Below are positions 1,870-53,280 of a stretch of 64,000 nucleotides of DNA, piece after piece (the stretch's first letter is position 1; every line of letters starts with the position of its first letter). This DNA is from Ranitomeya imitator (Eukaryota). The notes beneath the pieces were generated by a model, which had not been told where the DNA came from, ran no database searches, and saw only the letters and a list, made by a program, of their open reading frames with translations. The position numbers were made by a program, and so were the translations under genes. The stretch covers positions 519,250,001 to 519,314,000 of the forward strand of contig NC_091282.1 in the NCBI RefSeq assembly GCF_032444005.1. Direction: 5' to 3'.

Positions 1870-3150
1870 ACTCCCAGGGACGGTGGTCTCATCCGCGCAG
1901 CAGTCGGACCCCACGGTCACGACCTCTGCTGTGTACGGAGGGTACGATGCACTGTGCAGGCATTCCCCATGAGGACAGCCGAGTCCCGGGACCACAGTGC
2001 CTCTAGCCCAGCGGTATCCGCCACCGGAGGACTGTGGGGATGAGCGACCTCTGACCCTGGCCGTGACCCCAGCCTGTGTGCCGTCCTCTCCAGCAGGGGC
2101 GCATCCCCGGGTATACAGGCAGGTGGATGGCTGGTCACCAGGGCTGCCCGCGATAGGTGGGTGTCCCCGGGTGACCACGGCTGGCGGAGGCGGGCTCGCG
2201 TGCTGAGGGGAGTGGTGTGGACACGGGAGAGGCGGGGACTTGAAGCGTAGCCACGCCCACCAGCGAAGCAAGAGGTGAGCTGTGATCCGGCGGCCGCACA
2301 AGCCGGAGGAGCTGTCAGCAGCAGGAGCCCGGCAGTGGCGGAGCAGCGCAACAAGTGGCAAGTCCCTGCACTCATGTCCGTGGCCGGGTGCATGGCAAGG
2401 AGCCCGAGCAGCCACCGGTGCCCGCTGTCCCGGCACTGAGCCCATGTGCACACCTCCAAACTTGTCCCATGTGAGCGGTGGACGGGGAGATCGCACCCTG
2501 CACGGCGCCGGCCATGGCCAAATGGCTCAATAAGTACTTCAGCCTGGGCAACAACAATAACAACAAGAGCCCCCCGCAGCCCCCCAGACCCGACTACAAG
2601 CGGAACGGCGGCAGCGAGCGCTCCGTGCACCTGCAGCAGCAGTACCACCACCACACGTCCCCGCTGCCTGCCCGGGACGAGAGCGACCTCATCAGAGCCT
2701 ACCGGGCACAGAAGGAGCGCGACTTCGAGGACCCGTACAGCGGCCCCGGCTCGTCCCTCCGCAAGCTGCGGGCCATGTGCGGGGAGGAGCAGGCGGACGG
2801 CCGGAGGGGCAGGGCGCCGGGGTGCAGCAGCAGCAGCAGCCTCTTCCAGGAGCCCGGCTCCAGCACCAACACCACGTCCTCGTCCTCCTCCTCGTCCTCC
2901 TCCCCGCACCTGTACCGCAGCAACAGCGAGAGGAGGCCGCCCGGAGCCCGCCACCAGCCGCTGCCCGGGGCCGCCGAGCTCAAGTACATCGTGTCACCCA
3001 AGCACCGGCTCATCAAGATCGACGGCTGCAGCTGGGGCGACACCGCGGCCACCGGCTCGGCCGGCATCTCCTGGAGCCCGGCCGTCACTGCAGGCATGAG
3101 CAAGGGCGAGGAGCTGGGCACCTGTGCCAAGAAGGACAAGGTAAGATGCC
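1870..3150 (+). promoter_or_regulatory. CpG island / putative SHB promoter and 5' leader
   Basis: GC- and CpG-rich block covering the first coding exon, with GC-box-like AGGCGGGG at 2230-2237. The TSS cannot be determined from sequence. Confidence 0.65.
2514..3140 (+). CDS. shb: SH2 domain-containing adapter protein B, coding exon 1 (209 codons)
   Basis: Strong Kozak context (GCCGGCCATGG). The translation contains MAKWLNKYFSLGN, KSPPQPPRPDY, SDLIRAYRAQKERDFEDPY, GPGSSLRKLRAMC, SSPHLYRS, SPKHRLIK and KKDK, matching vertebrate SHB as I recall it. Phase-0 donor GTAAGA at 3141. Confidence 0.95.
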
Positions 3151-3179: not shown

Positions 3180-4560
3180 TGTCATGTGCCAGGCACTGTG
3201 CCATCTGTGACAGCCACATGTCACCTGTGTATGGTCTGTGCCAGCCACATGTGACCTGTGTACAGTAGGTGCCAGCTACGTGTCATGTGTGTAGTCTGTG
3301 CCATCAGTGCCAGCCACATGTGTGACCTGTGTGCGGTCTGTGCCATCAGTGCCAGCCACATGTGTGACCTGTGTACGGTCTGTGCCATCAGTGCCAGCCA
3401 CATGTGTGACCTGTGTGCGGTCTGTGCCATCAGTGCCAGCCACATGTGTGACCTGTGTACGGTCTGTGCCATCAGTGCCAGCCACATGTGTGACCTGTGT
3501 GCGGTCTGTGCCATCAGTGCCAGCCACATGTGTGACCTGTGTGCGGTCTGTGCCATCAGTGCCAGCCACATGTGTGACCTGTGTACGGTCTGTGCCATCT
3601 GTGACAGCCACATGTCACCTGTGTATGGTCTGTGCCAGCCACATGTGACCTGTGTACAGTAGGTGCCAGCTACGTGTCATGTGTGTAGTCTGTGCCATCA
3701 GTGCCAGCCACATGTGTGACCTGTGTGCGGTCTGTGCCATCAGTGCCAGCCACATGTGTGACCTGTGTGCGGTCTGTGCCATCAGTGTCAGCCACATGTG
3801 ACCTGTGTACAGTAGGTGCCAGCTACGTGTCATGTGTGTAGTCTGTGCCATCAGTGTCAGCCACATGTGTGACCTGTGTACGGTCTGTGCCATCAGTGTC
3901 AGCCACATGTGACCTGTGTGTACAGTCTATGCCATCTGTGCCAGCACGTGTGACCTGTGTGTACAGCCTGTGCCAGCGGTGTCAACCACATGTGTCACCT
4001 GTGTACGGCCTGTGCCATCGGTGCCAGCACATGTGTGACCTGTGTGTACAGCCTGTGCCAGCGGTGTCAACCACATGTGTCACCTGTGTACGGCCTGTGC
4101 CATCGGTGCCAGCACATGTGTGACCTGTGTGTACAGCCTGTGCCAGCGGTGTCAACCACATGTCACCTGTGTACGGCCTGTGCCATCGGTGCCAGCACAT
4201 GTGTGACCTGTGTGTACAGCCTGTGCCAGCGGTGTCAACCACATGTGTCACCTGTGTACGGCCTGTGCCATCGGTGCCAGCACATGTGTGACCTGTGTGT
4301 ACGGCCTGTGCCAGCGGTGTCAACCACATGTGTCACCTGTGTACGGCCTGTGCCATCGGTGCCAGCACATGTGTGATCTGTGTGTACGGCCTGTGCCATA
4401 CGTGTCACATGTGTAGTCTGTGCCATCAGTGCCAGCCACATGTGACATGTATATAAATGGATACAGTGTATGCCATCACTGCCAGAGATGTGTGTACAGT
4501 CTATGCCATCAATGTCAGCCACATGTGTGTACAGTCTGTGCCATGTGTGACGTGTACACC
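3180..4560. repeat. 42-bp minisatellite grading into an 85-bp dimeric unit
   Basis: Unit TCTGTGCCATCAGTGCCAGCCACATGTGTGACCTGTGTGCGG (starts at 3295, 3337, ...). From about 3967 the period is 85 bp. It explains the Cys/Val-rich periodic ORFs. Confidence 0.9.
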
Positions 4561-9824: not shown

Positions 9825-10128
9825 AGCCTCTTTCACACATCCGTTTTTTTTTTTAATCAGTCACAATCCATCAGTCTTGAAAAGACGGATCCTGTGCCGA
9901 TTGTAAAAAAATGACAGATCCGTTGAAGTAGTTACAGCCGGAATTTTAAGGAACAGAGAGAGATTTTCCCCTGAATGGAAATCCTTCCAGGCATGCTCAG
10001 TTTGAAAAAACATGGTCCGTCGCTGGATTCCGTTTTTAGACGGTCAGCGACGGATCCTGCATCCATTGGCTTACATTATAGCCAACGACGGACACCACTA
10101 GATCCGTTGCTAGGGGATTTTACGACCC
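9825..10128. mobile_element. Truncated Harbinger MITE related to the autonomous element
   Basis: TTA|AGCCTCTTTCACAC left end and several ACGGATCC motifs. It is cut off at the next MITE. Confidence 0.6.
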
Positions 10129-10928: not shown

Positions 10929-12680
<1,752 letters not shown>

Positions 12681-14630: not shown

Positions 14631-14784
14631 GGCCTCTTTCACACGTCAGTATTTTGTTAGTGTTTGTAGGCCAAAACCTGGAGTGGCTCTTAGAGAAAAA
14701 TTATAATTGAAAGATTGACTCCTGTTCTGTGTTTTGGGGCCACTCCTGGTTTTGGCCTACAACTACAGAAGTGTGAATAAAGCC
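14631..14784. mobile_element. Short Harbinger MITE with the same terminus as the autonomous element
   Basis: TAA|GGCCTCTTTCACAC ... GTGTGAATAAAGCC|TAG. Confidence 0.65.
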
Positions 14785-15892
14785 TAGCATAGATTGTTGC
14801 TCTTCCACCCTTGGCCTGTCAGGAATTATTGCACAATTATTGATAATGACAAGCCCTTGCATTTTTCAGGGAGCAGCGCTTTCTTTTCTGATTTGACATG
14901 TTGAATCTTGACAGACATCTGACACACTTAATCCATAAGGTTTGTGAAATGTGCCATGGAATGCTGCCATTCCTCGCGCTGTGGGTGCGGACAGCGGGCT
15001 CCTGGTCTTATCGGGCAGCTCGAACATTTCCGTGTGGTATAACCACTACATTGCGCTGGCAGCTGACACAGGCAGGTATTTCTGTCAGCTGGTCAGGGAC
15101 TGGGGTGTGAGTTATGGAGTAGACTAATGCTCTTGGCGTGTGTGGAACAGTTAGCTGTCAAAGCTGGGAGTCATAATTCTTCCTCCAGTTGGCCGGATCA
15201 CCAGCCCTCCTTTCGGGAAGGCTCATGTACACTGAAATGTTGGCACCTCTGCGCTGGAAGACTAGTGGTTCTGGAGAATGTCCAGCTGATCTAAGGAGAC
15301 GGGAACCTGCAAAAATCCCCAGCCCCATACAAAGAGCATGTGTATTTTTGGTCATTTATTTAGTAATTTACCTGTGCACCTGTTATTCAGACTCGCATAT
15401 GCTCTCTATAGTCTTTATTTCATGCTAGAATATTGCTTGGAAACATACTGTTACCTGGACTTAAAGGCATTCACCCCCTTGGCAGTTTTTGTGTTTTGCT
15501 GTCTCACAATGTCAATTTTGATGACTTTGTCCCTGACTTGTTTGGAGATCTCCTTGGTCTTCATGGCGTTTGGTTAGTGTTCTTTCACACTTCAGTTGTG
15601 TGGCGTCAGTTAGGTCCGACATCGTGGCGGATCGACGGATCCGTCAAATTTGGTGGAAAAACGGTTCTAACGGATCCGTTTTTTTGACGGATCAGCTGCC
15701 CCGATCCGTTTTAAAAACGGATCCGTTAGAACCGTTGCGACCGTTTTTACATCCGTTGTAACCGTTTTTTGACGGATCCGTTTTTTAAAAGAGGAGGATT
15801 TCAATGTGATTGGCTACTGGATACTACTGCAAAACTATATATAGCGTGTATTTACACCACATCTTTGAAAGGTTGTAGAGAAAGTGGCAGAA

Positions 15893-17234
15893 ATGGAAGG
15901 AGTCCTGGCGAACATTGCAAAGATCTATGCGGATTTTACTTTTGAGGCAAATCAGTTGGCAGTCAGCGTTCGAGAGAGGGAGGAACAAAGACTGCGCATC
16001 CTACGGCAGCGGCGGAAGAGAAGGCTGTGGATCCATCCCATCACAGCACAACGTATGACCCGTGGTGTTTATTCCACGCTTTACATGGAACTAAGGGAAA
16101 ACCCTCAAAAGTTCTTCAATTATGTGAGGATGAGAGCTGAAAATTTCGAGTTTTTATTAGGCTATGTGGAAGACTGTATACGTAGACGAGACACCCAGAT
16201 GCGATTCTCAATATCACCAGCAGAGCGTCTCATGGTGACTATTCGGTAAGTAATTTTTTTTTTTTAAATGATTCTCATTCATCAGACTTATAACTGTAAT
16301 GTTGTTTTTTGAATTTTTTTATTAATTATTGTCTTTTCGTTTTGTTAACAGATTCCTTGCAACTGGAGAGTCGTTCTCATCCCTCCATTTTCAGTATCGA
16401 CTTGGGATATCCACCATCTCGGGGATCATCAGAGATACCTGCCGGGCATTGTGGGAGTGCCTACAAGTGGAATACATCCCAGAGCCATCACAGGAGAGGT
16501 GGCTGGAGATCGCCCAAAATTTTCATCAAATTTGCCAGTTTCCAAATTGTGTTGGAGCAGTTGATGGAAAGCACATACGGATCGTCAAACCTTCAGGCTC
16601 TGGATCACAGTTTTATAACTATAAGAAGTACTTCTCTATTGTGTTGATGGCCATAGCCGATGCACAATGCAAGTTCATCGCTGTTGATATCGGTGCGTAT
16701 GGACGCGCAAATGATTCACAAATCTTTAAAAATTCACCAATGGGGCGCCGTTTATATGGAGAGACATTTGATTTTCCGCCCCCTAGACCTCTCCCTGGAA
16801 CCACTAGTCCACCATTACCATTTGTTTGTGTTGGAGATGATGCCTTCCAGCTTTCCCCACACTTGCTGAAACCCTTTGGAAGTAGTGGACTGACCCAGAG
16901 GAAAAAAATTTACAATTACCGCTTAACCAGAGCACGAAGAGTAGTGGAATGTGCTTTTGGCATCTTAACTGCCAAATGGAGAGTCCTGCTAACTGCAATT
17001 AAACTGCAGACTGAAACTGTCGATGATGTGGTCAAAGCGTGCGTTGTCCTGCACAATTTTGTTTTATCAAAAGAACAAGTTTCCCTGGAGGATAATGTTT
17101 CTGAAAGCACCTTACGGGATTACCAAAACCCCACTTTTCGCAGTCCAGTAGCAGTCTCCAGAATGCGGGACAGTTTTGCAGACTACTTCATGTCTCCTGC
17201 AGGATCAGTTGACTGGCAGTATGAAATGGTGTAA
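15893..17234 (+). CDS. PIF/Harbinger (HARBI1-like, DDE_Tnp_4) transposase, 411 aa, 2 exons
   Basis: Exon 1 is 15893-16245 (donor GTAAGT) and exon 2 is 16352-17234 (acceptor TTAACAG). The splice gives ...VTIR|FLATGES.... Catalytic motifs GAVDGKHI, VGDDAF and RRVVECAFG are present, with no internal stops. Confidence 0.92.
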
Positions 17235-17406
17235 AAAAATTTTTCTTTTTACACTTGTAAAAATACCATTTTTTGTTTGCTTACAAAATCTTTGTACTTT
17301 AATGCAGCATTGTATGTTTTGCAACGGTACCCTTTAAACACTGTTATTGTTACTATTGCCATAACCTTGGTGATTTAAAAACTTTACAAAAAAAAAAGAG
17401 AAAGAC

Positions 17407-17445
17407 AATAAAATTGTTTTTAAACCAAAAAACTGTTTATTTATT
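17407..17445. terminator. Head-to-head poly(A) signals for the two Harbinger genes
   Basis: AATAAA on + at 17407-17412. AATAAA on - at 17441-17436 and 17445-17440, overlapping the MADF stop codon. Confidence 0.6.
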
Positions 17446-19449
17446 TACAGATTCTCATAGTTTGGGGTGGAGATAGTAGCGGAGGGGCTGACAGGGCGGA
17501 CCACGTCGAGAGTGGGGGACAGGACATCACGGGGAGGAACAGAAGTAGAATGGGTGGTGAAAACATGAGGTTGTGTAGAGAGTTGAGGTGCTGATGTGGT
17601 GTGTGGGAGGTATGAAGGTGTTGGTGGGATTGGGAACGGAGAAGTTAAAGGGGAAGAATGGAAGGGGGACGGTAAAAACTGGGAAAGACTAAGGGGGGAA
17701 GGAACAAATGACGAAGGAGTAGAATGGACGGGAGGAGGACGGACAGGAGGAGGACGGACGGGAGGATAGACGGTGGATTGAGAGGGGAAAGGTGTTGACA
17801 CATGAAGGGTAGGTGGAGGGGCATGGGACATCGCCTGCGCTAGAGCAGTGTGGCAGCCTTGCATCACATGCATCTGCAGGTCAGGAGTTAGATTTTCCAT
17901 GTGCCTGAGGACCGACTGAAAAAAACAGTGCCTTGGTGACTGATTTGCATCTGATTGCATCCTATCAAGACGACTGCTGAGTTCAAGTATGCTTTTGTTA
18001 AGCATATTGTACCCAGCAGACGTTTGCTCACTCAAAAGCTTGATGGCACTGTGAAAGGATGCATTCAGCTGCAAAAAGTCAGGCGCATAGCTCCTTTCCT
18101 GACCTCTCTGGCGCTGCCGTCCTGACCACAACGTTGGTCTAGATGTTGCGGCAGTGGCAGAGGGGTGGGGTAAAGGGAACTCTAACTCATCACCTGCAGC
18201 TTCAAGTGACGAAGTCCGCCCTGCTGCTCCAGCGCTGGTGGATGAGGCTGAGGGATCAAACGAAAGGGAAGGTGCAGAAACAGAGGGGTTGACGTGGTCC
18301 CCGGTGGCGGACTCTTGAGGGATCGCTCCAGAGGGGTGCAACTCTGATGCAGGCTCCCGAGTGCTGCAGAAAGTGCTGTTAAAGAAGAAAAAAAAAATTA
18401 GTATCTGGATATTACAATTGCCCTTGCTGCAAAAAAAATTGAAGGTTACACATTTTTACAGTTTGACTGAAAATATGTGGTGTTGAATATTTACCTTCTG
18501 CTCAGCAGCGTCGACCGGAGGAACGACAGGGCTCTGGCATGTTTGTATCTGCTCCTGCGTCCTCTAGATCCACTCGGGGCCTGCATCTCCTTATTAAACT
18601 CCCTCTTGAAGCGATCCCTGAGTGACCGCCACCGCACGATAATCCTGTTACCTGGAAAGAAAAAGCAAAAATTGGTTACTATACACCACATTAAATCATG
18701 CCTAACATAAGGTTATGAAGTGTGAATACTTACGCGCTAGATCCTGGGCCCCAGCATCGAGTTCCTCCCAGTTATCCATAACAGCACTGCACACTTCCTC
18801 CCATAGCCGTCGGGTGATTAACTGGTCAGCATGGCGGCGGTCCGACATGTTCCACAGCGGCTCCCGACTTTGTACTGCTTCGATGAGGGTGTTCACATCG
18901 ATGCCCTCCTCTTCATCATCTTGTTCGGGAGCACGCTGTGAAGCCTAACAAAAAGATAAGAATAAAAAGGGAAAGATTACAACACATGAATTTTACATTT
19001 TACTAAACACCAAACCAAAAAGGAACTTACTCTTCGGCGACCGCCGCGATTATCATTCCGACGACTATGGGAGGTGCTTTGAGGAACTCTACGTCGAGCC
19101 CCGGATTGTGAAGACTAATTTAAAAAAAAAAAATAAAATTAATAATGTTCTTTGATCGAGGCATATGTATTGTGTGCTGTGCTGAATGTTTGTGTTGGGT
19201 GTAGTGCATTGTATGTGAGGATCGGTCTGTTCAAAACTTACACTATGCGCTCCCGCTCCTTGTATTTCTCCACCCTGTCCGTCTCCTTCTGTTAGCCCCT
19301 CTGCTTCATATTCCTGTGAATACAGAATAAACACATAAAGGCTTAAAATACAATTGCCATTGTTGCACCAAAATAAAAAATTTATGAAGAAAAAAAATTA
19401 ACACCTCAGTTTGCTGATGATGTGCTGGGGGGCTCTCAGAAGAAGACAT
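17445..19449 (-). CDS. Harbinger MADF/Myb-SANT-like DNA-binding protein, 499 aa from ATG 19449, 6 coding exons
   Basis: Exons are 19449-19405, 19313-19242, 19114-19031, 18944-18734, 18651-18495 and 18375-17445. All introns are GT-AG and phase-compatible (0, 0, 0, 1, 2). The MADF-like core reads IDVNTLIEAVQSREPLWN...LWEEV...RWRSLRDRFKRE...YKHARALSFL, followed by a BESS-like FFQSVLRHMENL segment and a Pro/Ser-rich tail. The true start may lie further upstream. Confidence 0.82.
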
Positions 19450-20462
19450 TATGATCTTGCGTCTATCTTGGGTTGGTCGGTCCCTTGCTTGGGTCCTCTT
19501 GGTCCCTAGAATCTGTAAGCATAAAGGGAGTTCTAAGCTACTATACAAAAGGATAGATAGATAGATGCAGCTTTCAGGACTTTACACTTACATCTGTTTC
19601 CAAAACTTGGGGCTTGCCTATAGCTTGGGTCGGTCGGTCCCTTGCTTGGGTCCTCTTGGTCCCTAGAATCTGCAAGTATAAAGAGAGTTCTAAGCTACTA
19701 TACAAAAGGATAGATGCAGCTGTAGGGACTTTACACTTACAACTTTAAAAAAAAAATGGGGAGCCTGCTTGTGTACGTCTTGGCTCAGTACCTACTACAG
19801 TACCTACAGTGCCAACTTATTTTTGATTTCCCCCACCACAAAAGAAAAAAAAAATTCTACCGTCAAACTTGATGCACAAGCTGCCAAACCCTCTACCTCC
19901 TGTTTCCCCACAAAAAAACCCCCCAAAAATCCCTTTAAAACAACACCAAAACTACTTAGAACTTGATATGCGCAATGCGCATGCTGTTAAAACCCACCTA
20001 AACAAAGTTTAACCTTATAAAAAATGTTCCTCATTCGAAATTAAAATACCAATCCCCAAAATTGTTAATTATGATTACCCTACAGTTTGTATTTTCTAAA
20101 ACCAGATAACATATTCTATAGCAAAGATTTGCATTACACATTTGTATATATAACCTTTACTGCATGTTTACCCAATATTACATTTATCTTGAAATGAGAC
20201 TACTGACAGTTTTGTGAAATTTTTATTACTATATTTTTTTAAATTTTCTTTTTTTTAGGGTACAGTAGGAGCTACACTGCTCTTTATTTGAAATACAAGT
20301 ACATTATGGAAAACAACAAAGATGCAGAACACATCACACATCATTTATACACACACACAAAACAAATTTTACACCACAGCTATTCAAAATACCAGCATAG
20401 TATGAAAAACATATAAACAGGGCAGGCAGGCACACGCACGCACGCACGCACGCACACACAGC

Positions 20463-20828
20463 CACCTTCTGTCTGTCCCTCGGCACTCTGCTTCTCTGCC
20501 CTGTGTGAGCACAGCGGCCGGAAAGCAGAGTGGTGACGTCACCGCTGTGCTCTGCTTTACGGCTGGATGGCGCTCACAATGCAGAGAAGCACAGCACGGG
20601 GACAGACAGCGGAATTTACCTTTTTTTTTTTTTACTTTTGCACTGGTAACCAGGGTAAACATCGGGTTACTAAGCGCGGCTCTGCAGTTAGTAACCCGAT
20701 GTTTACTCTGGTTACCGGCATCGTTGGTCGCTGGAGAGCGGTCTGTGTGACAGCTCTCCAGCAACCAAACAGCGACGCTGCAGCGATCCGGATCGTTGTC
20801 GGTATCGCTGCAGCGTGTGACGGTACCT
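20463..20828. mobile_element. Partial family-B MITE (right portion) inside the Harbinger element
   Basis: Contains GGTGACGTCACC and one 70-bp GGTAACCAGGG... palindrome; ends GTGTGACGGTACCT|TTA. Confidence 0.75.
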
Positions 20829-21182
20829 TTAGTAAATACATCAAAAATCAACATTAACCAATATGGCATTGACAAATGCACATGCAACCAACAAGATGCA
20901 CACAAACATACCTGCAAGCAGAGTCATAACGCAAGCATAACACATGAACAGGCGTAATATTGACGAAGGCATAATAAGGTGCAGGCACATGAACACATAC
21001 ATACAAAAGCACACAGCAGTACAAAAATACACACACACACGGCCATCAGTCCTCCGGCCGGAGCTTGATGTCTTCACAGTGGCAGGCCTCGGGGTGGATC
21101 TGGACTGTAGCAGGGCACTGGCTGTTGCAGGACGACGGCAGGCCTCAGGTTGGATTCAGGTTTTAAAAGCTCTTGCTGTACT

Positions 21183-21315
21183 NNNNNNNNNNNNNNNNNN
21201 NNNNNNNNNNNNNNNNNNNNNNNNNNNNNNNNNNNNNNNNNNNNNNNNNNNNNNNNNNNNNNNNNNNNNNNNNNNNNNNNNNNNNNNNNNNNNNNNNNNN
21301 NNNNNNNNNNNNNNN
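21183..21315. other. Assembly gap (133 N)
   Basis: Run of N. Other gaps are at 26517-26693 and 47178-47314. Confidence 1.
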
Positions 21316-21570
21316 CACATGGCTGTCTCAGGCAGGGTCTGGCTGGCACGGCCTCTCTGGCTGGCTGGCAGGGCCTCTCTGGCTGGCAGGGCCTGGCTGG
21401 CAAGGTCTTGCTTGCAGGGTCTGGCAGTGTGTCTCTGGCTGGCAGGGCCTCTCTGGCTGGCAGGGCCTCTCTGGCTAGCTGGCAGGGCCTCTCTGGCTGG
21501 CTGGCAAGGTCTTGCTGGCAGGGTCTGGCTGGGTCTCTCTTGCATTGAAGGGTCTGTCTTGCTGGCTGGT
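21316..21570. repeat. Imperfect ~18-bp tandem repeat (CTGGCTGGCAGGGCCTCT)
   Basis: Repeated CTGGCTGGCAGGG(C/T)CT units running into the gap, inside the Harbinger element. Confidence 0.8.
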
Positions 21571-22049
21571 ACATTTGGGAATGACCTGTCCTCTTTATAT
21601 AGTTTTTGGGTTGTCTGGGCAAAGTATCCACTTTTTGGAGCATGCTCAATCAAAAAAAGCGGATTGAGGCGACGGATCCGCCAAAAAGCGGATCGCGACG
21701 GATCCGTCGCCCATAGGCGCCCATTCTAAAAAAAGGCGGACACGACGGATCCGCCGCGGTCCGCCTTTTCGGCCGCGCCAAAAAACGTTACAAAGTCCGT
21801 CAATGTCTAGACAACGTCCGCCAAATATCGACGGATCCGTCGCATGGCGGATGGAACGGACGGCCATCCGCCACAATCCGTCTCTAATGCAAGTCAATGG
21901 GAAAATAGCGGATCCGCCAAAAAAAAATGGCGGATCCGCCATTTCACGAAAATGGCGGTTTTTGACTGACGCCGAAAGACTGAAGTGTGAAAGAGGCCTT
22001 AGTGGTTCCTCTTGCCTAATGGTGTTACAGCCTCTGTGGCCTTTCAGGA

Positions 22050-27636: not shown

Positions 27637-28306
27637 TAGTGATGAGCGAACGTGCTGGGATAAGGTGTTATCTGAGCATGCTTGGGTGCTAACGGAGTGG
27701 CTTCCGCATGCTCTAATAGTATGTTCGGGCCCCCGCTGCTGCATGTCTCGTGGCTGTTCGACACCCACAACCCATGCAGGGATTGCCCGCGAGACATGCA
27801 GCCGCGGGGACTCGAACATATTATTCGAGCACGCCGAAGACACTCTTGGCGCACGAGCATGCTCAGATAACACCTTAAGCTACTTTCACACTAGTCCATC
27901 GGTACGGGCCGTCACAAACCATCGGCCCGACGGACAGTGTGATTGATTAGCGCAACGTGGGCAGCGGATGCAGGTTTACAATGCATCCGCTGCCCATTGT
28001 GAGTTCCGGGGAGGAGGGGGCGGAGTCTTGGCCGCGCATATGCGGTCGAATATGGAGGACCCGACGCACAAAAAAAGTTACATTGAACTTTTTTGTTCGT
28101 CGCGGCCGCCAAAAACACGACGCATCCGTAGCACGGCGGACGCGACGTGTGGCAATGTGTCGCTAATGAAAGTCTATGGAGAAAAAACGCATCCTGTGGG
28201 CAACTTTTCAGGATGCGTTTTTTTTTTCCAAAACGACGCATTGCGACGTCCGTCACACGACGCTAGTGTGAAAGTAGCCTTATTCCAACACGTTCACTCA
28301 TCACTA
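27637..28306. mobile_element. hAT-type MITE (TAGTGATGAGCG family) interrupted by a Harbinger MITE
   Basis: TAGTGATGAGCGAACGTG ... CACGTTCACTCATCACTA with a perfect 8-bp TSD ATGTTCTC. Confidence 0.9.
27878..28279. mobile_element. Harbinger-type MITE nested in the hAT MITE
   Basis: TTA|AGCTACTTTCACACTAG ... CTAGTGTGAAAGTAGCC|TTA. Confidence 0.85.
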
Positions 28307-28575
28307 ATGTTCTCATTTTCATGTTCCCCGGTTAACATTTAGGGCATGTGTATTAAATATTTTGGCATACCTCTGTAAACACAATTGTCCTGGTGCTACA
28401 TAATCATCTCCTTTTCTATGCCATGTACCCGTGGTAAATGCCACTCATTGGTCATGCATTTTCTAAGGTTCAAGCAAAGGTTTTGTTTGGTTTCTGTTGC
28501 CATACTTTAAACCAAATGAGATTTTAGTCACAAATTTAGTGAAGGGAATTCTATCCCCACATATACAGTGCAGCA

Positions 28576-29150
28576 GTGTTGCGCCTGTGTGGATGCGGCG
28601 GTGTTGCGCCTGTGTGGATGCGGCGGTGTTGCGCCTGTGTGGATGCGGCGGTGTTGCGCCTGTGTGGATGCGGCGGTGTTGCGCCTGTGTGGATGCGGCG
28701 GTGTTGCGCCTGTGTGGATGCGGCGGTGTTGCGCCTGTGTGGATGCGGCGGTGTTGCGCCTGTGTGGATGCGGCGGTGTTGCGCCTGTGTGGATGCGGCG
28801 GTGTTGCGCCTGTGTGGATGCGGCGGTGTTGCGCCTGTGTGGATGCGGCGGTGTCGCGCCTGTGTGGATGCGGCGGTGTCGCGCCTGTGTGGATGCGGCG
28901 GTGTTGCGCCTGTGTGGATGCGGCGGTGTTGCGCCTGTGTGGATGCGGCGGTGTCGCGCCTGTGTGGATGCGGCGGTGTCGCGCCTGTGTGGATGCGGCG
29001 GTGTTGCGCCTGTGTGGATGCGGCGGTGTTGCGCCTGTGTGGATGCGGCGGTGTTGCGCCTGTGTGGATGCGGCGGTGTCGCGCCTGTGTGGATGCGGCG
29101 GTGTCGCGCCTGTGTGGATGCGGCGGTGTCGCGCCTGTGTGGATGCAGCA
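28576..29150. repeat. 25-bp minisatellite, 23 copies
   Basis: GTGT(T/C)GCGCCTGTGTGGATGCGGCG with exact 25-bp spacing and no spacers. Confidence 0.97.
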
Positions 29151-32100
29151 CCCTTATTGAATCTTTTACAAGTGGATGACAACTGGACTTGTGAGCAGAG
29201 CCTAAGGATGCATTCACACATAGCTGTCGCATTGCTTTTTATTCTTTTTTTCCACTGCAAGTTTCCTAAAAAGACATATGACTTATATTTACGCCATATG
29301 TCTTGTCCCTGACTTTGATGCGGGATCAGACACTGAGACATAACTGATGTCATTAGATGTCATGTGCCTTTAACAGCCGGATCTGAGGACCTCCCGTGGC
29401 TGTTAACCAGGTAAATCCCTCTGTCAATCTGACGAGATTGAACAAGTGCCAGCCAAAACGCGTTATTCTGGCTGCCTATTGGCACCCCGTCATGTGATCA
29501 CAGGACTCCGATGGGTTGTCATGACAGCCAGGGGTCTGCAGAAGACCCCCATGCCTGTCATTACTGTACTCATGTAAATGACAGCTTGTGGCTGGCTTTC
29601 ATAGGAAACTGTGATTTCTGCTATACAAAGCAGTGCTGCAGCAATATAACGTATAGCACAGGCAATCAGATGGTCGCAGCTTCCGGTCTCCTTAGAAGAC
29701 TATTAAATCAAGTAAAAAAAAGACTGAAAAAAATACAAGTTCAAATCGGCTCCCTTTATCCCATTTGAAAATTATAACTGCTTAAAAAAAAAAAAGCTAA
29801 TATTTGGTATCGCTGCGTTCTTAAATGTCCAATCTATCAAAATCATCGTCCTCATGAGGCTTATGCATGGGGCTTATGGTTTTTCCAGCTTGCAAAATAT
29901 GATGGGTTCTGTAATGCTGCTGGCCCATTGTACTTAGAAATAAGTGTGGGGGAAAAAATGTAATGCCATTTATCGCTTCCAAAATTTTCTAACACAGGGT
30001 ATTAAACCTTTTTATAACTTTTTTTTTTTTTTTTTTTTAAATATCTTCCAGCCCTTTTAAGTACATCAGATTGGTGGGGGCCTGGTTTCCTTACACCCCT
30101 AGGAGGTGCTTGCCTCATGAGACAGACTGTGCACCACGCCTGCCTGAGAGTGTGTAAAGTAATACATTCAGTAGAAAATCTATGCTACAAAGCCTAAGCC
30201 TTCTAACAGAAAAGGATGACAATTCTATATGAAAGTGTAGACCAAGGGAGGTGTGTATTGGGGATTTTATCTTTTTTTGGATGCATGAAATCAGACCGTG
30301 GCATTTCATACAAGTGACTTTCGGTAAATGGAATTACTGAATTTTCCTCAGGATTGGTCATCCATGTCAGATTGGTGGTCCCACACCCAGTACCCCCGCT
30401 ATTCAACTGTTCTGAGCTCCTGTGGCCTTATACACACAGTTACAGAACGGTTCATCTCCCCTCACGGTGTATTGGCCATCCTCTAGGAGCTGAGCTAAGA
30501 ATGGCCAGATTGGTGGGGGTGCTGGCTGTTAGACCCCAACGGAAGTGATATTGATGACCATAAATACGAGCTAGCTTCAGAAGACCCCTTTTATGTATTC
30601 TGCTTTGTAGTATAAGGTTAGAGTACCGTCTATATAGCCGTGAGAAAATAATTGGTCACACACTGTAACCTATGCTTAATTGGCATGTAGGTGTTACCGT
30701 TCTGGTCAGTCAATGGTTTCCCTTCACACCCTAACACTATCGGCAGTGACCTGACACTGGCATTGTGTTGGGACAATGAGCTTCTACAAAAATAATGAGA
30801 ATACCAAGTTGTCTTGTTTCCAGGAGGAGTGTTACTGGAACAGACGTACCAGGGGGATATAACAGAGTATGGTGGTTGTTCTTCTCACCCTAATCTTGTG
30901 ACCATGTTGGTACTCTGTAGCTGACTGAGGGGAGCTCCACCTTACCTGCCGGAGTCCTCGGTGCCTCTTCTGGTTTGTAGGCCTCGTGCTGTGCCATCCT
31001 TGTGGAGTGATGCACCATGAATGACGTTGTGCCATGGATTCCAGCAGGTAGCTAGTGCTTGCAGATGGCTGCTGGCCCAGGTCCTGTGAATCCATTCGCT
31101 CTTCTCGAATTATTCTGTATGAGATCACTGTTATTCTTTTCTAATGTGCTTGTCCCTTACGGACAATACAAGTGGCCTCCTGCCTTTCACCACGCGGTTA
31201 GGTGTTCACTCTTGTTCTGTAGTTTTCCATATTTTAGGACTGGAGTTAACAAAAGAGAACAATTTATTGTTTTAGATGTTCCTAGCTTTCTGCATCATGG
31301 AGGGCAATATTGTACGTGGGCTGGTGGAGATTGTGTGCCACGGCTGCCTTTTGGTTCCAATCCGGCCCTGGCTGCATACCACACACCTTGTGTCCACAAT
31401 TTGCTGACATAAGTAGCCCATAAATGAACGAACGCAGATAATCCTAGCCTCTCAAATCTGCTTAAAAATGTAGCCTGTAGTGTCTATCACCACCTAAGGT
31501 AAGAGCTGGTTGTCCTGGAACAGCGGCTTGGCCTTCTCTGGTTATATTCCTATTTCTTTATTTTTGCAATGAGTATCGGTCGATTTTAAAAATAAATAAA
31601 AATAAATTAAAAAAACTAAATAAAATAAAACAAAAAAAAAATCTTTAAAATCTTCCACCTGCATTAAATACATATTGGCACGTTTTATGTAACTTTCCAC
31701 AGTGCAAGAACCTGAGACCTAATATGTGGCTCAGACTGGCCCATAGGTAAGCGGGTGAATTACCTGGCGGGCCCCCCGCATGGGCAGTATTTACAAACAG
31801 AGGCAGCATCTCCTCATTCATTTAATGACCTTTCCAATGTATTATTATTACATAAAGACATAGGTGCATTTGTGAACATGGCAGAATAGTGGGCACCCAT
31901 TATCAATGGTGCTGGTGTGGTCCGACACTGCCTGGAAGTGTATGGCAGCTTGTGCTTTGTGACGGGAGCTCTGCTGACTCACTTCTGGGAAACAATAACT
32001 ATGTACGGCCATTGTTTCAGCTTCTCCTGACATATTATTACAATGTGGAATGATGCCAATGTCCAGGAATGTAACAACGCTGGAATAATGTTTAACCTGA

Positions 32101-41249: not shown

Positions 41250-41984
41250 GGGTACCGTCACACTATACGATTTACCTACGATCACGACCAGCGATACGAC
41301 CTGGCCGTGATCGTAGGTAAATTGTAGTGTGGTTGCTGGGGAGCTGTCACACAGACAGCTCTCCAGCGACCAACGATGCCGAGGTCCCCGGGTAACCAGG
41401 GTAAACATCGGGTTACTAAGCGCAGGACCGCGCTTAGTAACCCGATGTTTACCCTGGTTACCAGCGTAAAAAAAAACAAACAGCACATACTTACGTTCCG
41501 GTGTCTGTACCTTGCCGTCTGCTTCCCGCACTCAGTGACTGTCTGCCGTAAAGTGAAAGCACAGCACAGCGGTGACGTCACCGCTGTGCTCTGCTTTCAC
41601 TTTACGGCCGGCAGTCACTGAGTGCGGGAAGCAGACGGCAAGGGACCTGACGTACACCAGAATGTAAGTATGTGCTGTTTGTTTTTTTTTACATTTACGC
41701 TGGTAACCAGGGTAAACATCGGGTTCCTAAGCGCGGCCCTGCGCTTAGGAACCCGATGTTTACCCTGGTTACAAGCGAACGCATCGCTAGATCGGTGTCA
41801 CACACCGATCTAGCGATGACAGCGGGAGATCCAGCGACGAAAGAAAGTTCCATACGATCTGCTACGACGTACGATTCTCAGCAGGATCCCTGATCGCTGC
41901 TGCGTGTCACACAGCGATATCGTAACGATATCGCTGGAACGTCACGAATCGTACCGATCGAAATGGCACTGTGTGACGGTACCC
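41250..41984. mobile_element. Harbinger-type MITE, family B
   Basis: TTA|GGGTACCGTCACAC ... GTGTGACGGTACCC|TTA, with perfect TIR and TSD. Confidence 0.92.
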
Positions 41985-51580: not shown

Positions 51581-53280
51581 ATGGGTAAAGGTACCGTCAC
51601 ACATAGCGACGCTGCAGCGATACCGACAACGATCCGGATCGCTGCAGCGTCGCTGTTTGGTCGCTGGAGAGCTGTCATACAGACAGCTCTCCAGCGACCA
51701 ACGATCCCGAGGTCCCCGGTAACCAGGGTAAACATCGGGTAACTAAGCGCAGGGCCGCGCTTAGTAACCCGATGTTTACCCTGGTTACCATCCTAAAAAG
51801 TAAAAAAACAAACGCTACATACTTACCTACCGCTGTCTGTCCTCGGCGCTCTGCTTCTCTGGTCTGGCTGTGAGCGCCAGGCAGCCAGAAAGCAGAGCGG
51901 TGACGTCACCGCTCTGCTTTCCGGCTGACCGACGCTCACAGCCAGAGCAGGAGGAGAGCAGAGCACAGCGCTGGAGGACAGACAGCGGTAGGTAAGTATG
52001 TAGTGTTTGTTTTTTTACTTTTAGGATGGTAACCAGGGTAAACATCGGGTTACTAAGCGCGGCCCTGCGCTTAGTTACCCGATGTTTACCCTGGTTACCA
52101 GCGAAGACATCGCTGAATCGGTGTCACACACGCCGATTCAGCGATGTCTACGGGGAGTCCAGCGACGAAACAAAGTTCTGGACTTTCTTCCCCGACCAGC
52201 GATCTCCCAGCAGGGGCCTGATCGCTGCTGCCTGTCACACTGGACGATATCGCTAGCGAGGACGCTGCAACGTCACGGATCGCTAGCGATATCGTCTAGT
52301 GTGACAGTACCTTAAGACTAGCGACCTGACAGATGTCAAGAAGGCCATCATTGACACCCTCAAGCAAGAGGGTGAGACCCAGAAAGAAATTTCTCAACAA
52401 ATAGGCTGTTCCCAGAGTGCTGTATCAAGGCACCTCAATGGTAAGTCTGTTGGAAGGAAACAATGTGGCAGAAAACGCTGTACAACGAGAAGAGGAGACC
52501 GGACCCTGAGGAAGATTGTGGAGAAGGACCGATTCCAGACCTTGGGGAACCTGAGGAAGCAGTGGACTGAGTCTGGTGTGGAAACATCCAGAGCCACCGT
52601 GCACAGGCGTGTGCAGGAAATGGGCTACAGGTGCCGCATTCCCCAGGTAAAGCCACTTTTGAGCTACAGAGAAGCAGCACTGGACTGTTGCTAAGTGGTC
52701 CCAAGTACTTTTTTCTGATGAAAGCAAATTTTGCATGTCATTCGGAAATCAAGGTGCCAGAGTCTGGAGGAAGACTGGGGAGAAGGAAATGCCAAAATGC
52801 CTGAAGTCCAGTGTCAAGTACCCACAGTCAGTGATGGTGTGGGGTGCCATGTCAGCTGCTGGTGTTGGTCCACTGTGTTTCATCAAGGGCAGGGTCAATG
52901 CAGCTAGCTATCAGGAGATTTTGGAGCACTTCATGCTTCCATCGGCTGAAATGCTTTATGGAGATGAAGATTTCATTTTTCAGCACGACCTGGCACCTGC
53001 TCACAGTGCCAAAACCACTGGTAAATGGTTTACTGACCATGGTATTACTGTGCTCAATTGGCCTGCCAACTCTCCTGACCTGAACCCCATAGAGAATCTG
53101 TGGGATATTGTGAAGAGAAAGTTGAGAGACGCAAGACCCAACACTCTGGATGAGCTTAAGGCCGCTATTGAAGCATCCTGGGCCTCCATAACATCTCAGC
53201 AGTGTCACAGGCTGATTGCCTCCATGCCACGCCGCATTGAAGCAGTCATTTCTGCCAAAGGATTCCCGACCAAGTATTGA
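51581..53280 (+). pseudogene. Tc1 DD34E transposase pseudogene
   Basis: ATG GGT AAG is split by the MITE, then reads TSDLTDVKKAIIDTLKQEG.... The frame shifts near 52660, then FSDESKF, FQHDLAPAH, SPDLNPIENLW and AKGFPTKY*. Confidence 0.92.
51589..52312. mobile_element. Harbinger-type MITE, family B
   Basis: TAA|AGGTACCGTCACAC ... GTGTGACAGTACCT|TAA. Confidence 0.92.

Follow-up and report, generated by a model that had tools for sequence, protein, structure and literature searches.

A 64,000-nt stretch of the genome of the frog Ranitomeya imitator (contig NC_091282.1, positions 519,250,001 to 519,314,000 of the forward strand), hereafter the window, carries at positions 15577–21998 a PIF/Harbinger transposon with two convergent genes, one for a DDE transposase and one for a MADF-type protein. 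The analysis clearly showed that the element, of very young age, has kept both of its genes coding-intact and is one member of a multi-copy R. imitator family. It is flanked by TTA at 15574–15576 and again by TTA at 21999–22001, i.e., by the 3-bp TWA-type target-site duplication that characterizes Harbinger elements. The terminal inverted repeats (TIRs) lie at 15577–15610 (plus strand) and 21965–21998 (minus strand, read inward), where the arms 15581–15610 and 21965–21994 form 30 nt of 87% complementarity, again as expected for the superfamily. Both the pairing of a DDE with a MADF gene and the TTA duplication are standard for such transposons (PMC13668399, PMC9710019). Together with the DDE_Tnp_4 and MADF domains described below, these ends bear out the original prediction, made by reading the letters of the window, of a two-gene PIF/Harbinger element at this place with both genes open.

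The transposase gene on the plus strand consists of exon 1 (15893–16245; 117 codons plus 2 bases, matching the RefSeq protein P0124), a 106-nt GT..AG intron (16246–16351) and exon 2 (16352–17234, stop codon included), which encodes the DDE_Tnp_4 domain with the acidic residues D189, D239, D280 and E317. The spliced product of 411 amino acids is free of stops and residue-for-residue identical to P0124, thus confirming the canonical splice model that had been predicted. The Pfam profile DDE_Tnp_4 (PF13359) is covered from end to end (1–158 of 158, E = 2.7e-30), which places the enzyme in the IS5-like type. Among 20 homologues of 39–70% identity, D189 and E317 are invariant, while D239 and D280 are conserved in at least 90%, so that the D-D-E triad noted in the original prediction is indeed kept, whichever of D239 and D280 serves. 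In the AlphaFold model of the transposase (predicted local distance difference test, pLDDT, 81; predicted template modelling score, pTM, 0.76), strand 184–195 is followed by strands 213–220 and 226–233, helix 239–245, strand 276–278 and a long helix 300–326. According to the usual RNase H-like topology, strand 1 would carry D189, the catalytic helix would carry E317, and D280 would directly follow strand 4; because of this topology, D280 rather than D239 is the predicted second catalytic aspartate, and we take the triad to be D189/D280/E317, with D239 probably a conserved extra acid. A Foldseek comparison with the PDB gave only weak matches (E of 0.03 or worse), all of them DDE transposases or integrases (piggyBac, the IS4-type ISCth4, Mos1 and Tn5), and a sequence search of the PDB found no relevant match.

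As to more distant homologues of the transposase, Xenopus proteins are 48–50% identical to exon 2 over 99–100% of its length. A protein of the aphid Aphis glycines (P0063, 487 aa) shows 54% identity over 66% of exon 2, a match that could possibly hint at horizontal transfer or contamination.

Between the convergent stop codons lies an AT-rich spacer of 210 nt (17235–17444) with AATAAA on the plus strand at 17407 and on the minus strand at 17436 and 17440. The MADF gene on the minus strand comprises six exons. Exon 1 (19449–19405) begins with the ATG at 19449, the same start as in the paralogues P0149 and P0176; exon 2 (19313–19242) is followed by exon 3 (19114–19031), which is arginine-rich and by eye resembles a nuclear localization signal. 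The first half of the MADF domain is encoded by exon 4 (18944–18734), whose internal methionine at 18848 is the start of a 400-aa RefSeq model, and the second half by exon 5 (18651–18495), while exon 6 (18375–17445) supplies the C-terminal 310 codons with a conserved BESS-like block, a proline-rich tail and the stop codon. All five introns are GT-AG with compatible phases, and the spliced product of 499 aa is open. It is identical to the RefSeq protein P0199 (499 aa) at 498 of 499 positions, the only difference being N219D, which fully supports the six phase-compatible exons proposed earlier for the MADF protein. Distant paralogous families of the same genome, represented by P0149 (492 aa) and P0176 (504 aa), are likewise collinear with the six-exon model. 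When exons 4 and 5 were scanned apart, the Pfam MADF domain was split into profile positions 1–37 and 48–84, whereas in the spliced sibling P0199 MADF_DNA_bdg (PF10545) is complete (1–84 of 84, E = 9.9e-12), as expected of the second gene of such an element. The domain is thus whole only after splicing, which provides independent support for the exon 4/5 junction.

In the C-terminal part, a block comprising F342, Q343, E350, L352, Q357, M358 and M361 is kept across families of 49–60% identity. The BESS motif (PF02944) scored E of 0.027–0.046 and 14–15 bits against a cut-off of 21, and its hits, which recurred in 7 of 16 relatives, never reached the threshold; we therefore do not assign the protein to the MADF-BESS group but note only a resemblance at the conserved block. 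The block at residues ~340–361 is a candidate protein-interaction surface, which may contact the transposase. A third gene of the Myb/SANT kind was sought among the open stretches of 19450–21998 and none was found, the ten longest having no Pfam match at E = 1, although a short multi-exon gene could escape such a search.

The 2.2 kb that precede the MADF start contain a tandem duplication (19456–19744; copies 19456–19595 and 19613–19744, 86% identical), a nested MITE-like repeat of an unrelated family (20469–20831; MITE, miniature inverted-repeat transposable element), a CA-rich tract, an assembly gap and a minisatellite. The nested repeat has further copies in the window at 11744–12231, 41327–41775 and 51586–52102; the four copies of this ~400-nt repeat are 74–82% identical and have strong internal hairpins (20645–20673 with 20688–20716, 97% complementary). 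That the repeat is rather diverged while the element around it is very young suggests that the master copy already contained it. The gap (21183–21315, 133 N) is located in non-coding DNA, with the MADF start codon on one side and the right subterminal arm on the other, and adjoins the minisatellite (21338–21540, period 18–22, ~9 copies), a typical cause of an assembly break. No reading frame is crossed by the gap: both the transposase gene (15893–17234) and the MADF gene (17445–19449) lie to the left of it in unbroken sequence. By eye, CCAAT-like and TATA-like letters are seen inward of each subterminal arm (15805–15890, ahead of the transposase ATG, and 21590–21650). If the MADF promoter is near the right arm, the gene would have a 5′ intron of ~2 kb that holds both the nested repeat and the gap.

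The subterminal arms share a striking feature, the 8-nt palindrome CGGATCCG. The left arm (15611–15892, plus strand) bears four of them, at 15636, 15671, 15718 and 15773, and the right arm (21651–21964, minus strand) six, at 21673, 21699, 21746, 21832, 21909 and 21931, usually in the context (G)ACGGATCCG(T/C)C. All ten copies found on scanning the 64 kb fall within the two arms, against an expected number of 0.15. The observed/expected CpG ratio is 1.55 in the left and 1.64 in the right arm versus 0.56–0.58 in the remaining window. By analogy with known Harbinger systems, the CGGATCCG palindromes may be the recognition sites of the MADF protein.

The 6-Gb genome of R. imitator harbors many close relatives of this copy, which we compared by means of RefSeq proteins and gene tables (assembly GCA_032444005.1). 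P0124, the protein identical to our transposase, is encoded at 7 loci, and further full-length variants are encoded at ~7 (P0122) and 4 (P0121). In total, at least 18 loci have a full-length 411-aa transposase and at least six have both full-length genes, modelled by NCBI as ‘uncharacterized protein’; they are spread over several chromosomes inside unrelated genes, in keeping with the multi-copy state expected of the superfamily. The 90%-identity cluster of the transposase comprises 31 distinct sequences; of the 15 members listed, nine are full-length at 411 aa. The MADF protein P0199 is encoded at 5 loci, each time 210 nt from a 411-aa transposase gene, and the 400-aa protein P0198 is annotated beside P0124 at three loci. 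The recurrence of both proteins at several loci shows that the reading frames of this copy did not arise by chance. Since P0198 stands beside P0124 at several loci, the N219 variant must itself have spread; we considered D219N as a private mutation of this copy and rejected it in favor of a subfamily marker, because P0198 has it at other loci as well. With respect to every other relative, N219 represents a CpG-to-CpA change.

Over 411 + 400 codons, the copy has no private amino-acid change with respect to its siblings. Several transposase variants (V157A+H176Q, Y133F+S270G and S368C) are common to several loci, which fits the existence of several sub-lineages, each of which would have transposed and multiplied. 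The identity of the proteins, the shared variants and the high CpG ratio of the arms point to a very recent amplification of the family, without implying its present activity. Because the copy is so young, its open frames carry no evidence of selection.

Two further observations concern the family. At least 10 loci of the sister species R. variabilis encode a 401-aa MADF protein (P0197) that is 95% identical to ours; no transposase is annotated within 5 kb of these loci, as against 210 nt between the stop codons in R. imitator, and the 15 members listed for the 90% cluster include no transposase from R. variabilis. The loci may be MADF-only derivatives or reflect an effect of annotation. Besides, a number of RefSeq models fuse a Harbinger transposase to host proteins, namely membralin, MIS12, UCHL5, SIRT3, GABA receptor beta-2 and SPF27 (the models being P0133, which belongs to the cluster of P0001, and the search hits P0004, P0007, P0028, P0030 and P0049), so that intronic Harbinger copies end up in host gene models or transcripts.

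The insertion site could be recognized from its flanks. A Tc1-like reading frame on the minus strand has its ATG at 15564, 9 nt from the left junction, and stops after 37 codons, and the right flank by eye reads as the upstream leader of the same gene; the Tc1-like element hosting the insertion is therefore dead, just as the original prediction had it. BLAST of both 400-nt flanks against the 64-kb window returned self matches only, i.e., no paralogous empty site within the window. On the wider scale, an open frame at 2514–3140 (plus strand) forms a 209-aa exon followed by a GTAAGA donor; it starts with MAKWLNKYFSLGN and contains LIRAYRAQKERDFEDPY, and we take it to be the N-terminus of SHB. 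An atlas look-up of this exon led to SHB/SHF-type clusters with a score of only 0.70. One of the 7 P0124 loci lies inside a plus-strand gene for a 477-aa product with an SH2 domain, the spacing of the genes being exactly as in the window. This supports an intronic location of the element, past the first coding exon of an SHB-like gene and on the same strand as that gene. Thus, of the earlier designation ‘SHB intron 1’, the plus-strand intron of an SH2-domain gene past an SHB-like first exon holds good, while the number of the intron and the name SHB are tentative.

Taken together, the data lead us to conclude, with a probability of roughly 0.8, that the locus represents a very recent insertion of an autonomous-type PIF/Harbinger transposon, its target having been a TTA within the 5′ part of a dead Tc1-like element, in an intron of an SHB-like gene. 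Several observations nevertheless weigh against this conclusion. While letters 6–20 of the TIRs are identical, the tips diverge: letters 1–5 are GTGTT on the left and GGCCT on the right, with differences at positions 2–4. Related MITEs of the window have ends reading GGCC, AGCC, GGCT or AGCT, hence the right end, which has the same form as these, resembles the ancestral one and the left tip would be the altered one. Because three adjacent positions differ in a copy otherwise devoid of private coding changes, independent point mutations are unlikely; more probably, the difference goes back to one end-repair event or to an error of the assembly. The letters TTAGTG are found on both sides of the element (15574–15581 and 21999–22004), such that the odd GTG of the left tip equals the host letters after the right TTA; this coincidence may be the scar of an end-repair event or a matter of chance (1 in 64). 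With letters 2–4 of its left end differing from the right end, the copy is possibly impaired in cis, and it is more likely a source of proteins in trans than an efficient substrate itself. Next, RefSeq calls at this locus a 400-aa product only (17445–18848, P0198), equal to residues 100–499 of the 499-aa model, and the right-arm promoter may be unused here. In addition, the MADF start is separated from the presumed right-arm promoter by the nested repeat, the tandem duplication and the unread gap. Finally, frames that are open merely through youth say nothing about silencing by the host.

The last point leads to the explanation that the copy is a young but inert relic, i.e., that the family has been silenced (by methylation or PIWI-interacting RNAs, piRNAs) and has stopped moving, which would leave this copy without a role either as helper or as substrate. 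We regard this as a serious possibility, albeit one with less than an even chance. Selection on the copy is not evidenced, and the identity with its siblings is what youth alone would give; moreover, the left end is altered, the region upstream of MADF is broken by the nested repeat and the duplication, and D219N, which defines the subfamily, is a CpG-to-CpA transition of the sort seen in methylated DNA. A precedent is also available, since the Harbinger burst of sea kraits slowed sharply while intact copies persisted (PMC8437027). The fact that several protein variants each occur at 4–7 loci speaks for distinct lineages that multiplied recently rather than for inertness, and the CpG-rich subterminal motifs are undecayed. 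The opposite extreme, where this very copy would be a live helper mobilizing the TWA-flanked MITEs of the window at 9825, 14631 and 27878, was favored by the original prediction, but we find it improbable. It is true that the terminal cores are alike: the MITE at 14631–14784 (154 nt, TAA/TAG) agrees with the right TIR in 19 of 20 letters at its left end and, as judged by eye, in 17 of 20 at its right end, the MITE at 9825, for which no right end was detected, in 17 of 20, and the MITE at 27878–28279 (402 nt, TTA/TTA) in 12–15 of 20 (GGCTACTTTCACAC). The duplications of the MITEs are TTA or TAA, and in rice Ping and Pong cross-mobilize mPing despite their diverged proteins (PMC2836001). However, the likeness is confined to a terminal core of 14–20 nt, BLAST revealed no internal similarity between these MITEs and the element, and the CGGATCCG palindrome is absent from all three: the MITE at 27878 has GCATCC/GGATGC-type repeats of its own, the one at 14631 has no GGATCC-type motif and the one at 9825 has only two partial sites of the GGATCC type. 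The genome also contains many other Harbinger families at 50–75% protein identity, and if the MADF protein reads CGGATCCG, the MITEs would more likely be served by these; cross-mobilization by our element is possible by analogy with rice, though not indicated. Nor can this copy claim a special role as a helper when at least 18 loci, already annotated by NCBI, encode a full-length transposase that is the same or nearly so.

The remaining explanations deny that the element is what it seems. The stretch to the right of the gap might come from another copy or place, so that the 6.4-kb element would be a chimera of the assembly. Admittedly, a 133-N gap of estimated length in a minisatellite of a multi-copy repeat is a typical site of a wrong join, the length of 6.4 kb includes this estimate, and the joining of the right arm is supported indirectly, not read through. 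Yet the same TTA stands at both ends, the TIRs form a pair, the same palindrome occupies both arms, the Tc1-like ATG of the left flank and the leader of the right flank are consecutive parts of one gene (as judged by eye), and neither of the two genes depends on the gap, all of which makes a chimera very improbable. Still harder to accept is a domesticated pair of host genes, an early co-option like that of HARBI1/NAIF1, immobilized through loss of the left end. Both frames are open, one terminus is altered, and Harbinger gene pairs are known to have been co-domesticated recurrently (PMC9710019, PMC9392472), but many loci, distributed over several chromosomes and lying in unrelated genes, code for the same proteins, the TIRs, the duplication and the subterminal repeats are all present, and nothing points to an orthologous single-copy locus. 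Since domesticated genes would be expected at a single locus without TIRs, we rejected this explanation on the grounds of copy number.

If the element is indeed a recent autonomous-type transposon, its mode of action can be proposed from the systems studied in zebrafish and rice. For the zebrafish element Harbinger3_DR, a Myb-like protein was shown to bind a repeated subterminal motif as well as the transposase and to be needed for nuclear localization of the latter, both proteins being required (PMC9710019, PMC2836001). By analogy with Harbinger3_DR and Ping/Pong, the MADF protein would bind the CGGATCCG palindromes in both subterminal arms, bind the transposase, carry it into the nucleus and position it at the ends of the element, where the transposase, a DDE enzyme with an RNase H-like core, would cleave the DNA at the TIRs and insert the element anew into TWA targets. 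Both genes would have to be expressed, the palindromes bound and the element active for this scheme to operate in the frog. More tentatively, one may suppose that the family is transposing now in the germline of R. imitator, that its native complementary DNAs (cDNAs) work, that CGGATCCG represents the MADF sites, and that the MADF-only offshoot in R. variabilis needs a transposase in trans; we consider this set of suppositions rather doubtful as a whole.

Among the known systems, Harbinger3_DR/Harbinger3N_DR of zebrafish is likewise a vertebrate system with a DDE transposase, a Myb/SANT/MADF partner and a TWA target (PMC9710019, PMC2836001). Its consensus was rebuilt from dead copies, whereas the frog copy is naturally open in both genes; the frog element also differs in having the 8-nt palindrome CGGATCCG as a putative motif and in its convergent, spliced genes, which have 1 and 5 introns. 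Harbinger-Snek of sea kraits resembles the frog family as a tetrapod element with many coding-intact two-gene copies, 269 of them fully intact in Laticauda colubrina (PMC8437027). It has solo-ORF (open reading frame) variants and MITE-like derivatives, and its activity was deduced from near-identical copies and RNA sequencing, the latter in L. laticaudata (PMC8437027). In contrast to Harbinger-Snek, which was acquired by horizontal transfer and makes up 8–12% of the genome (PMC8437027), the frog family is small, with tens of coding loci, and relatives of 50–75% identity across dendrobatid and other frogs suggest that it has long been resident. Ping/Pong with mPing in rice share the two-protein mechanism, the TAA/TTA duplication and the mobilization of Tourist-like MITEs in trans (PMC2836001); they belong to a plant lineage and their activity was shown experimentally, while the frog element is known from sequence alone. 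The host genes HARBI1 and NAIF1 derive from the same two protein families (PMC9710019, PMC5741667), and some of the frog homologues are named by NCBI ‘putative nuclease HARBI1’ or ‘ALP1-like’. Unlike these single-copy genes, which lack TIRs and a duplication, the frog element is multi-copy and has both. Turmoil2/Harbinger-1M_cIno of Caenorhabditis inopinata also combines DDE_Tnp_4 and MADF_DNA_bdg with a TTA duplication, and its MADF-only derivatives (PMC13668399) resemble the pattern suggested by the R. variabilis annotation. Turmoil2 is, however, a nematode element with head-to-head genes, whereas in the frog the genes are tail-to-tail and stand together in several R. imitator copies. Expansion and expression of Harbinger elements were reported in a newt (PMC5741667). 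For R. imitator itself, the publications consulted mention Tourist/Harbinger simply as one class of repeats (PMC8457190, marked retracted; PMC12822217).

The frog copy is thus a good candidate for activity but not a new kind of element, and the general knowledge of the superfamily is unchanged by it. To our knowledge, transposition in vertebrate cells has been demonstrated for a single Harbinger, the one reconstructed from dead copies of zebrafish. In the frog, a natural family whose many two-gene copies are open and identical provides ready cDNAs and ends for testing the two-protein mechanism, and it could reveal the subterminal motif read by the MADF partner as well as the effect of the end sequence on mobility. 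Were the family active at present, it would provide a naturally active vertebrate PIF/Harbinger without the need for consensus reconstruction. It also marks one lineage of DNA transposons in R. imitator that was probably active very recently, and the intronic, same-strand position of the copy could affect the splicing of the SHB-like gene.

Two other regions of the window may be mentioned. Just downstream of the SHB-like exon, at 3221–4376, there are long tandem arrays with spurious open frames on both strands. Beside the MITE at 27878–28279, a long tandem repeat (28463–29353) yields open frames in both directions, the longest of 296 aa, and is probably a minisatellite, not a gene.

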